From positions 1,413,244 through 1,477,243 of the forward strand of contig NW_003314290.1 in the NCBI RefSeq assembly GCF_000143415.4: a stretch of 64,000 nucleotides of DNA. Direction: 5' to 3'. The notes beneath the pieces were generated by a model, which saw only the letters and a program-made list of their open reading frames with translations, had not been told where the DNA came from and made no database searches. Positions 52,500 through 55,332 of this stretch are shown piece after piece. The stretch's first letter is position 1; the number at the start of each line of letters is the position of its first letter. Both the position numbers and the translations under genes were made by a program. The DNA comes from Selaginella moellendorffii (Eukaryota > Plantae > Lycopodiophyta).

Positions 52500-55332
52500 A
52501 TGTTGCATGGAGGGGAGCGCGGCGGCTACCTGGCGGCGGAGATGGATCTTCTCGGCGGCCAGGTGAGATCGCCCGGGAATCACCACCACCACCACGGCCT
52601 GGGCGGCGCGGTGGAGGAGATTGATCTGGAAATGGGGGCCGCGGCGGGGGTTGTGGACGATGCGAGCTTCGCGCGGGCGGCATTTGCGGTGGTGTCCTCG
52701 TCGCCCGAGGCGTCTGCGAATCAGCAGGCGATGCATCACGTCCTGGATGGATCGCCGTCGTCGCAGGAGCTATCGGCGCAGCTCTTGTCGTCGGACAAGC
52801 CCCGGAAGAAGAAGAAGGTCGTCAAGAAATGGAGGGACGAGTGGGCCGACACGTATAAGTGGGCTTGCGTGCAAATGGTGGAAGGCTCGTCCAGGATTTT
52901 TTGCTCGGTGTGTAAGGAGTATGGACGCAAGCACAGGAGGAATCCTTATGGCAACGAAGGTAGTCGCAACATGCAAATGAGCGCTCTCGAGGTAAGATCA
53001 TCGTTGTTCTTTCGCTCGCTATCTTCATCGTCTCTAACCTCCTCTCTTTTTTTATATTTTTTCACTCCAGGAGCATAACAATAGTTTGCTTCACAAGGAG
53101 GCCTTGAGATTGCAGCTAGCGTCGAAAGACCGGGGAATTACGCTCTTGGAGAGGCCTATATACATCAAAGGTTCGTCTTTGCGTTTTTAGTTTCGCGTTT
53201 GTGTGCGTCTTCGTTTACTCAAGCCACTAACTCGGGGTTTTTTGTTTAGCTCTTCTCTCCAAGAGCGCAGAGTCGATCATAGAGACTGTCATTAGAAGGG
53301 ATCCTCACGAGAGTGAATACATCCAGGCTGTGCAAGAGATTGTTCACTCGCTCGAGCCGGTTCTCTCCAAGAACATCCAGTAAGTAGTATCTGCCTTTCT
53401 TTTTTCTTTTTTTTTTCTTTTGTATATTGATTTACTGTTGCATCCTGTCGCTAGAATAGATTGATTAGGAATGCGGCTCTGATGACATATGACTTTGCCA
53501 TCCAAGGTACCTCCACGTATTGGAAAGCCTCTTGGAACCAGAACGAGTGATTATTTTCAGAGTTCCATGGGTCGATGACAAGGGAGAGAAGCATGTAAAC
53601 CGGGGGTTCCGTGTACAGTTCAATCAGGCTCTCGGACCTTATAAGGGTGGTCTTCGTTTCCATCCGTCTGTTAACTTGAGCGTTCTCAAGTTTCTAGGCC
53701 TCGAGCAAGTATATTACAGTCGAGGCTAGTTCCACGTTTCTAACGGCTGGACGTTTTTGTAGACTTTAAAGAATGCGCTCTCAACATTCAGTTTCGGTGG
53801 TGCTGAGGGTGGCAGTGACTTTGATCCGAAGGGAAAGTCAGACACCGAGGTTCTTACAATTTTTTTTGCTAAGGACGCATCATTTATATTTACTTCCAGG
53901 TGATGAGATTTTGCCAGAGCTTTATGGATGAGCTTTTTCATCACATCGGTCCTAATCAGGTGTGTCAGTGTGTCTCATTTTACGGATCATTTACTTATTT
54001 GGCTTTTGTAGGATACGCTAACTGGAGATATTGGCGTTGGATTCCGGGAGCTTGGTTATCTCTACGGACAATATCGGCGACTGACTGGAGAATTTGAGGT
54101 GGTTCAAAGCCGTGAAAGTTATCAATTATTGCAATTCTTTTGTACAGTGTGCTTTAGTTGGAGGCCGGAACTTGCTCGCAAACTCCAATTTACATGCAGA
54201 AGCTGCTGGTCATGGCCTGGTGACTTGGACTTGATGAGATCGTAAATTTTTATTATGATCTTACGTGTTTTCCAGGTGTATTATGCCAAACATGTTCTGG
54301 CGGACTTGAACAGGGATATCAAGGGCTTAAGGTTGTTTCTGATTCTACAAAAATATGTCACTCGTGTTTTTTAATTTGCTCGTTACAGGTGCCTTATCAG
54401 TGGGTCGGGTAAGCTTGCGATGCACGTCATGGAGAAGCTTATAGCTGTAGGAGCGGTCCCCGTTTCCTTATCTGGTAAGCGTGAATATAGTCCGGGCCAG
54501 AAAGACCAGTCTACTCTTGTCAGATTCCAAAGGTTTTTTACTTGACGACGAAGGATTCGATGGGTCCAAAGCCATGTTTCTAAAGGACATGAAGTCGCAG
54601 CAAAAGCCTCTGAGGTTCTTTTATCTCGAACGACTTGCAGTCTGTAACACTCGTTTACAGGGAGTATACAAGGAGATACGTAAGAGCGAAATATTTTGAC
54701 GATGCCAGGCCTTGGGGCGAGAAATGTGATCTCGCATTCCCTTGTGCTACACAGAACGAGCTTAACCATTCTGATGCACTGGCAATTATCTCTTCAGGAT
54801 GTCATGTAATTGTGGAAGGTTAAGTATCATTTCGTTTCTACTTTTATAAACAACGGCTCTTGCAGGTTCTGATATGTCTTGCACGGCGGAAGCTATCGAC
54901 GTGCTTAGGAAGTCGAAGATAATCGTGGCTCCTAGCAAAGCTGCAAATGCTGGAGGAGTAAGTCCGATAGTCGCTCACGATGCTCTTAGCTTTGAGTTGC
55001 ATACAGGTAGCGGTTTCGGGGCTGGAGATGGCTAGCAAAAGCAACCAAATGCATTGGACTGGCGAAGAAGTTGATACCAAGTTACAGGTACTATCATTTT
55101 TATTTCCAGTTTATTAACGTTTCAATTTAGGAGCTCATGAGGGACATCTATCAAAAGTCCGTGGCAGCAGCTGCAGCGTGTGGCCACTCTAAAGATGGGC
55201 CAGAGTGAGTTGTTTTCTCTTTTTGTTTTGTCTGGCTACTCACCAGTGATTCGCAGAGCTCTAGTCCACGGTGCCAACGTAGCTGGATTCTTGCGTGTCG
55301 CGCAGGCGATGCTTGAGCAAGGATGCGTGTAA
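52500..55332 (+). CDS. NADP-GDH-like protein with N-terminal TTF-like Zn finger; catalytic Lys replaced by Glu
   Basis: N-terminal [19 protein letters not shown]...FCSVCKEY...[17 protein letters not shown] body [66 protein letters not shown] and [15 protein letters not shown]; ends EQGCV*. Confidence 0.9.

Follow-up and report, generated by a model that had tools for sequence, protein, structure and literature searches.

The stretch analysed here, referred to as the window, comprises 64,000 nucleotides of the lycophyte Selaginella moellendorffii (NCBI RefSeq assembly GCF_000143415.4, contig NW_003314290.1, positions 1,413,244 to 1,477,243 of the forward strand). On its plus strand, at 52500-55332, lies a gene in which a zinc finger is fused to a glutamate dehydrogenase (GDH)-like protein that lacks the catalytic lysine. 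A manual gene model, built from the three forward frames of 52400-55400, contains 16 exons running from an ATG at 52500 to a TAA at 55330-55332, with a coding sequence of 1944 nt and a product of 647 amino acids (aa); all 15 introns are of the GT..AG type and are 43-127 nt long. The product is 100% identical over 633 aligned aa to the S. moellendorffii protein SELMODRAFT_90033 (P0276), and this identical twin stood in for the window protein in database searches. The SELMODRAFT_90033 annotation begins at Met15 (52542) and places the intron 9 junction one codon away from that of the manual model, and RNA contigs favour the manual model at this junction.

Expression was examined with public RNA-derived contigs from four runs belonging to four studies, placed on 52400-55500. 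Approximately 55% of the sampled words from the gene stretch are present in public runs, which is near the exonic share. All 15 junctions are covered, by single contigs of 2.0-2.1 kb in runs X1, X6 and X9 and by two contigs in X2, and because the contigs omit precisely the 15 modelled introns they derive from spliced RNA. The initial annotation of this locus, made by a model from the letters of the stretch, had conceded that the proposed fusion would fall if the finger exons were not spliced to the GDH exons; contigs of all four studies span the junctions, with the finger exons (1-2) and the GDH exons (3-16) on one transcript. At the codon for the catalytic position, no alternative letter occurs in the contigs of any run. 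An expressed zinc-finger/GDH fusion without the catalytic Lys is a confirmed observation.

The GDH half of the protein is a complete bacterial-type (type I, 'NADP') GDH fold of the Glu/Leu/Phe/Val dehydrogenase superfamily. P0276 matches ELFV_dehydrog_N (PF02812) with 156 bits and ELFV_dehydrog (PF00208) with 224 bits, and the best PDB matches of the Arabidopsis orthologue are NADP-GDHs, with up to 480 bits. The essential catalytic Lys of a competent GDH (EC 1.4.1.4) is replaced by Glu323, and both the gene model and the RNA contigs bear out the earlier reading of GGAEGG, with a GAG codon, in place of GGGKGG. The loss of this residue stands, but its earlier description as the Schiff-base Lys reflects an older view: the catalytic Lys (K125 in the numbering of the Clostridium symbiosum enzyme) is essential and activates water, and no covalent enzyme imine is required. 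The LTGKG...GGSxxRPEATGYG segment of competent GDHs is also missing. In the diverged loop encoded by exon 8, which accounts for the altered segment described initially, the Lys of TGK and the Arg, Thr and Tyr of RPEATGYG are all replaced, and the predicted local distance difference test (pLDDT) score falls below 50 at P0276 residues 373-383, an exception inside an otherwise confident GDH fold. Paralogue a of the lycophyte Diphasiastrum has the same E at the catalytic position and a near-identical version of this unusual exon 8 loop, and the variant is therefore conserved within lycophytes.

Much of the remaining active site is kept. The window protein retains 123 of the 150 columns that are invariant in active GDHs, including the substrate-carboxylate residues K287, K311 and S575, the catalytic D363 (the four residues that had been listed as kept) and the GxGxxA pattern. 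The GSGNVA motif reads GSGKLA, as had also been noticed. This was considered as a sign of decay and rejected, because Lys-retaining moss proteins carry GxGK too; K for N at this site is found family-wide.

The N-terminal region consists of a tail, a basic run and the finger. The tail has a mean pairwise identity of 40% and a pLDDT of approximately 30 in the full-length model, and a short EEIDLE motif within it is kept in all orthologues. The basic run, directly N-terminal of the finger, is where the initial annotation had placed a run resembling a nuclear localisation signal (NLS), and its composition makes it a candidate for such a signal. The match to PF25431 reaches 82 bits on the whole protein P0276 (residues 105-168, cut-off 29.5) and 58 bits on exon 1 alone. 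The Cys/His finger that had been predicted is present, with the ligand pattern C-x2-C-x27-H-x5-H, but its His spacing is H-x5-H and not H-x4-H. The columns of C135, C138 and H166 are invariant or nearly so in 27 sequences that include finger-only relatives, and H172 is invariant within the GDH-fused family. Together the basic run and finger (78 residues, aa 101-178) have an isoelectric point of 9.8, compared with 6.2 for the GDH part. An AlphaFold2 model of the finger by itself has a pLDDT of 74, with a core at 82-87, and consists of a beta-hairpin carrying both Cys followed by helices carrying both His. The full-length AlphaFold2 model begins with a disordered tail; the finger then folds as a unit of its own and is connected by a linker of low confidence to a GDH fold that is confidently predicted (pLDDT 85-95).

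Features of the zinc-finger/GDH-like gene, in window coordinates
Feature	Position	Strand	Remark
Exons 1-8	52500-52991, 53071-53170, 53250-53379, 53507-53708, 53763-53849, 53900-53959, 54012-54098, 54148-54219	+	manual model, RNA contigs
Exons 9-16	54276-54331, 54389-54474, 54524-54614, 54661-54818, 54866-54957, 55007-55087, 55131-55204, 55257-55332	+	manual model, RNA contigs
Minimum mature transcript	52433-55396	+	contig starts 52433-52502, ends 55396
N-terminal tail, aa 1-100	52500-52799	+	poorly conserved, predicted disordered
Basic run, candidate NLS	52800-52829	+	near-invariant in 39 land-plant sequences
zf-C17orf113 zinc finger, aa 119-182	52854-53124	+	Pfam PF25431; interrupted by intron 1 (52992-53070)
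Finger ligand codons	C135 52902-52904, C138 52911-52913, H166 53074-53076, H172 53092-53094	+	gene model
Lys287 of GPYKGG	53643-53645	+	substrate gamma-carboxylate Lys, kept; sequence comparison
Lys311 of LKNAL	53769-53771	+	substrate alpha-carboxylate Lys, kept; sequence comparison
Glu323 (GAG) at catalytic Lys position	53805-53807	+	GG[GA]KGG reads GGAEGG
Asp363 of GDIGVG	54027-54029	+	catalytic Asp, kept; sequence comparison
Exon 8 diverged loop	54148-54219	+	replaces ..LTGKG..GGS.IRPEATGYG; includes aa 390-409
GSGKLA dinucleotide-binding glycine motif, then ...SLSDSKG	54402-54419	+	G-x-G-x-x-A pattern intact
Ser575 of VSGLEM	55016-55018	+	substrate gamma-carboxylate Ser, kept; sequence comparison

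Two further observations concern the transcript. Intron 8 (54220-54275, 56 nt) is retained in one contig, from X1 (one of the four runs), where it would shift the frame just ahead of the dinucleotide-binding domain; the contig may represent a minor isoform, unspliced or alternative. Upstream of the main start codon, an ATG in a different frame begins a reading frame (52451-52624) that overlaps that codon; this upstream ATG is present only in the longest RNA contig, which starts at 52433. The remaining contigs begin at 52488-52502, and these differing starts mean that the transcription start may vary and that the true start could be Met1 or Met15.

The fusion is a land-plant family. A phmmer search with exon 1 against 1.8 billion representatives returned only 25 proteins, one of them full-length (Euphorbia P0003), and a search with this protein brought in angiosperm proteins, well over 100 in number, that share the three Pfam domains and are named 'NADP-specific glutamate dehydrogenase' in their sources. 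Among them is Arabidopsis At1g51720 ('GDH4', P0098), the extended Arabidopsis 'NADP-GDH' that the initial annotation had mentioned; it is 57% identical and has Ser in place of the Lys. Members outside the angiosperms were found in two steps, first with a profile built from N-terminal fragments of non-seed plants and then with a Sphagnum query; the contigs bearing two of these fragments (P0010 and P0005) stop before the GDH exons. Full-length fusions occur in mosses (Sphagnum, Ceratodon, Physcomitrium), liverworts (Marchantia, Riccia, Calypogeia), lycophytes (Selaginella and two Diphasiastrum paralogues), ferns (an Adiantum/Pteridium cluster), gymnosperms (Wollemia and a Ginkgo cluster), early-branching angiosperms and monocots. 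No hornwort or algal fusion was among the retrieved sequences; these searches could not exclude such members. The conservation of the finger across land plants, which had been put forward for checking, holds: across 39 sequences the basic run and finger have a mean pairwise identity of 89%, with 51 of 78 columns invariant, and are the most conserved part of the protein. The corresponding values are 78% for GDH domain I, 67% for domain II and 60% for the C-terminal part. This pattern suggests that the finger has been kept almost unchanged by selection for more than 400 million years.

The catalytic position behaves differently from the finger. K is present in all 16 bacterial and archaeal GDHs compared (16/16) and in mosses, apart from Q in one Physcomitrium paralogue, and moss genomic DNA (metagenome contig L003) reads GGAKGG. 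Liverworts have M or T, Selaginella and Diphasiastrum paralogue a have E, Diphasiastrum paralogue b has K, ferns have G, and gymnosperms have A, G or V. Early angiosperms and monocots mostly have G, core eudicots and grasses have A (as in the maize orthologue), and Arabidopsis and tomato have S. With mosses and one Diphasiastrum paralogue keeping the Lys, a consistent loss across land plants, for which the initial annotation had proposed an alignment, was not borne out. A maximum-likelihood (ML) tree of the GDH domain, computed with the Lys column removed and rooted on bacteria, agrees with the species tree. Grouping all Lys-less rows in one clade was rejected (approximately unbiased (AU) test, p-AU 3.6e-5), while grouping the Lys-less vascular-plant rows was not rejected and gave a log-likelihood 15 units above the quick ML tree. 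For this reason, at least three independent losses, in liverworts, in vascular plants and in a moss paralogue, are the safe conclusion from these comparisons. A single ancient loss in all land plants is rejected by the moss genomic DNA, the moss proteins and the AU test, and a scheme of four losses, with lycophytes and euphyllophytes separate, is not robust given the better likelihood of the joint vascular tree. The changes from K to E, Q, M or T each require one base change, and from E another single step leads to G or A; these steps would fit E as an intermediate in vascular plants.

Two paralogues deserve separate mention. Diphasiastrum complanatum paralogue b (P0294) keeps the Lys, yet 34 of the 150 GDH-invariant positions are changed (its first motif reads GHYKGGLCF, and the R and E of RPEATGYG are lost), and retention of the Lys alone therefore does not mean an intact enzyme. 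The position of P0294 in the tree decides between one and two losses in vascular plants. The P0280 cluster, which includes Ginkgo Gb_09942, represents a gymnosperm paralogue that has diverged along a long branch; it has Val where the Lys would be and reads GPYEGG. Because Ginkgo has a typical copy as well (P0153), an old duplication in gymnosperms is indicated.

Conservation after the loss was counted over the 150 columns that are invariant in 16 active GDHs. Mosses have 15-20 of these columns changed, liverworts 16-23, lycophytes 27-34 (27 in the window protein), and ferns and seed plants 32-41. The periphery of the active site thus degenerates further in vascular plants, the fold itself without decay. 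The substituted residues have in turn become fixed: all seed plants have GPCRGG, carry Glu ahead of the catalytic Asp and have Gly or Ala where S380 would be. The seed-plant changes include K89->R, G164->E and S380->G, to which core eudicots add D165->E. The substrate residues that had been described as kept are therefore present in the window protein but are specific to lycophytes and bryophytes, being altered in seed plants. In seed-plant GDH4 the TG..GSS.R.EATGYG loop is better kept than in the lycophyte protein. Among the matches listed, angiosperm orthologues are 80-93% identical to the Euphorbia protein and sit on short tree branches.

Comparison with active enzymes places the family close to bacterial and protist type-I hexameric NADP-GDHs (Escherichia coli GdhA, Plasmodium falciparum 3r3j/2bma, C. 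symbiosum 1bgv), which have the same two-domain fold of approximately 440 residues. Identity to bacterial GDHs is approximately 50% for the window protein and 52-56% for the GDH domain of mosses. Active type-I GDHs differ in having no N-terminal finger and in always having the catalytic Lys, the Lys of TGK, the Arg of RPEATGYG and GSGN. The moss fusions of Physcomitrium, Ceratodon and Sphagnum share the finger, basic run and linker of the window protein, to which their GDH domain is 65-66% identical, but keep GG[GA]KGG, with Gln or Ala at the S380 position; judging from these residues, they may still be enzymes. Arabidopsis At1g51720 and rice OsGDH4 have the same architecture of PF25431, PF02812 and PF00208 and a near-identical finger, and in both the catalytic Lys is absent. 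In a survey of rice, the GDH4 class shows stronger conservation than the NAD-GDHs, as well as broad expression (PMC9820731), and in reviews its activity and function are called unclear (PMC7733991). NADP-GDHs have been described as sharing a conserved three-lysine motif and a GVLTGKG motif, the latter segment being called a second coenzyme-binding motif (PMC1716157). In the open-access literature, no paper was found on the missing Lys of GDH4, on its finger or on a pseudoenzyme reading. The gene family and its name are already known; its interpretation as a GDH that was inactivated repeatedly and is attached to a near-invariant zinc finger appears to be new.

The affinities of the finger are less clear-cut than those of the GDH domain. 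The initial annotation had likened it to the TTF-type fingers of hAT transposases. Sources do label relatives of the finger 'TTF-type' (P0161 and P0346), and its nearest language-model neighbours are hAT-derived proteins (DUF4371, FAM200/ZBED5, GTF2IRD2, zf-C2H2_12, zf-BED), all with scores below 0.9, but Pfam zf-BED has no match at E 0.01 or better in P0276. The hAT-derived fingers of C17orf113, ZBED5/FAM200 and GTF2IRD2 (zf-C17orf113/TTF/BED-like) have the PF25431 match in common with the plant finger, whereas the transposase and hAT dimerisation domains of hAT transposases are both absent from the plant fusion. No PDB structure of the zf-C17orf113 finger family turned up in fold searches. 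In an exhaustive VIA-align search with the finger, the top matches (Z 6.2-4.6) are the C2H2 fingers of TUT4, Prp11/SF3A2, U1-C and TUT1, followed by JAZ and ZFa (Z 3.4-3.0); all are RNA- or ribonucleoprotein-associated fingers with long His spacing, at Z values below the trust level of the tool. These values are middling, so that the likeness to U1-type fingers is a lead and not a classification. Binding of nucleic acid by the finger, whether DNA or RNA, is plausible on these resemblances.

Relatives that consist of the finger without a GDH are also found. In plants they include Psilotum P0017 and Taxus P0018, as well as P0015 and P0019, which are approximately 35-38% identical to the GDH-fused finger and follow the pattern RGPRSW..W...PWAFVR..GEERMFCTVCEAHG... 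These constitute a second, unstudied plant family with the same zinc finger. Finger-only relatives occur in fish as well, and one member of a fish cluster is named 'TTF-type domain-containing protein'.

The replacement of the catalytic Lys by Glu means that the GDH reaction is most likely lost and that the Selaginella protein is most likely unable to catalyse it. The finger, the fold and the dinucleotide motif are kept after this loss, and a GDH-fold pseudoenzyme therefore fits; the loss of an essential residue, long-term conservation and expression, which together mark a pseudoenzyme, are all found. The interpretation given in the initial annotation is supported in part. A non-catalytic, finger-dependent function is in our judgement fairly probable; the leading mechanism would be ligand sensing combined with binding of nucleic acid in the nucleus. 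From sequence, we infer a lack of activity, ligand binding, an oligomeric state, a nuclear location and a DNA or RNA target, which could be combined as follows. A flexible linker would join the basic run and finger to a GDH fold acting as a ligand-binding pseudoenzyme. Like its hexameric relatives, the protein would probably be oligomeric, in which case each assembly would present multiple fingers together. Anchored in the nucleus to nucleic acid or chromatin through the finger and basic run, it would couple a metabolite or redox signal, such as NADP(H), 2-oxoglutarate (2-OG)/Glu or a related acid, to gene regulation. Selection would keep the finger, the fold and the dinucleotide motif and, in lycophytes and bryophytes, also the residues that hold the carboxylates of Glu and 2-OG. 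Dehydrogenase-fold regulators such as CtBP and plant ANGUSTIFOLIA, fungal NmrA and the Bacillus 'trigger enzyme' RocG serve as working analogies only; in these, a dehydrogenase fold able to bind a dinucleotide or substrate has been put to use in relaying metabolic or redox state to transcription. Catalytic residues are lacking in NmrA and ANGUSTIFOLIA, and RocG, itself a GDH, controls a transcription factor related to nitrogen. However, CtBP/ANGUSTIFOLIA and NmrA are unrelated in sequence to the fusion, RocG is an active GDH of another class, and all of them act through partner transcription factors and have no zinc finger of their own.

Several findings weigh against such a nuclear ligand sensor. 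The seed-plant pocket has been rebuilt by the three substitutions given above, so that Glu or 2-OG as a ligand is doubtful there. Mosses keep the Lys, and the ancestral fusion may therefore have been a working enzyme, and the finger may have a purpose other than sensing. In a Foldseek search of the PDB, the finger model had no match at E 0.001 or better, and the weak fold matches (best Z 6.2) favour RNA-binding U1-type over DNA-binding fingers. In addition, NADPH-dependent amination is reported for His6-TF-OsGDH4 made in and purified from E. coli BL21, with a signal much weaker than that of a fungal GDH, and a Km for NH4+ of 12.4 mM is quoted for OsGDH4 from Zhou et al. 2015 (Planta) (both PMC6776155). 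An extension of the nuclear sensor to all land plants, as a GDH-derived hexamer with six near-invariant fingers, in which the need for catalysis was lost at an early stage and selection acts on a finger-mediated attachment to chromatin or RNA that NADP(H) or ligands of the 2-OG/Glu type would gate, is put forward only as a tentative proposal that we regard as rather doubtful.

The resemblance of the finger to RNA- and protein-binding fingers (TUT4, TUT1, Prp11/SF3A2, U1-C, JAZ) also bears on an alternative role, in which the protein is a non-catalytic subunit that co-assembles with, or regulates, Lys-containing paralogues or other enzymes, with the finger as a protein- or RNA-binding module in the cytosol or organelles. 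An H-x5-H spacing, as found here, is usual in the RNA- and protein-binding finger class and counts in the same direction, and the K-type and Q-type paralogues of Physcomitrium, like the K-type and E-type paralogues of Diphasiastrum, could form mixed oligomers. Nevertheless, only K-less copies were found in angiosperms, ferns and liverworts among the retrieved sequences, so that an active partner of the same type is missing there, and the canonical plant GDH1-3 belong to another GDH class. The basic run beside the finger resembles a classical NLS, and every one of the finger fold matches lies below the trust level of the tool. A subunit role is considered unlikely, if worth keeping in mind.

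It is appreciably less probable that the protein is still a working NADP(H)-GDH, or a related 2-oxo acid dehydrogenase, that uses another residue or mechanism and is localised or regulated by its finger. The weak amination and NH4+ Km reported for recombinant OsGDH4 would suit such an enzyme, but the E. coli BL21 host makes an NADP-GDH of its own, and no specific activity is given in PMC6776155. The window protein still has most of the remaining active-site and cofactor residues, and moss members retain the catalytic Lys; the Lys of TGK and the Arg of RPEATGYG are, however, lost as well. In seed plants, a Lys/Arg has newly become conserved five residues upstream (..PYKLGGAxGG), from where it might in theory extend to the site, but the window protein has Ser and not Lys at this position, together with an acidic Glu in the site. 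The replacements found across the family (E, M, T, Q, V, G, A and S) have no common chemistry, and the equivalent Lys is essential in the GDHs studied, including Lys130 of human GDH according to the cassette mutagenesis cited in PMC1716157. A former enzyme drifting towards a pseudogene in Selaginella, to which the lost Lys, the strongly diverged exon 8 and the single run with an intron 8-retaining contig might point, is refuted in practice by the intact frame of 647 codons, the fully spliced transcript in four independent studies, the same E and exon 8 variant in Diphasiastrum, from which Selaginella has been separated for hundreds of millions of years, and the high conservation of Lys-less orthologues across all vascular plants.

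The gene is counted as a fourth, NADP-dependent GDH in plant nitrogen papers and genome annotations, and studies of nitrogen-use efficiency measure the GDH4 transcript as that of an enzyme; if the protein is non-catalytic in vascular plants, these readings need revising and the old question of the role of GDH4 can be put to direct test. Were the land-plant-wide sensor to be true, an unrecognised direct link between carbon/nitrogen status and gene expression would lie under the label 'NADP-GDH / GDH4'. Both Lys-containing (moss) and Lys-less (liverwort, lycophyte, angiosperm) versions exist in tractable model plants. With one fusion event, a near-invariant finger, a catalytic residue lost repeatedly and a fold that is kept, the family offers a natural experiment on how enzymes become regulators.

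The sequence flanking the gene contains a few further features. An assembly gap (a run of N at 52079-52240) lies approximately 260 bp upstream of the start codon, and the promoter of the zinc-finger/GDH gene is therefore incomplete in the window. Between the gap and the start codon, in the 5' flank and 5' untranslated region of the gene, the 25-nt direct repeat CTGTGAAAACTTCTATTCTCTGCGA is present as two exact copies and one 64% copy, at 52260-52284, 52344-52368 and 52437-52461, with spacings of 84 and 93 nt; a promoter element or the remnant of a repeat would be possible explanations. Upstream, an open reading frame on the plus strand (51219-52076) encodes a B3 DNA-binding domain (PF02362, 50.6 bits) and runs into the assembly gap. 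Downstream, a gene on the minus strand has an exon (56267-56653) that matches the Dicty_CAR family (slime-mould cyclic AMP receptor-like, seven-transmembrane) with 30 bits, and is probably a GCR1-type receptor gene.

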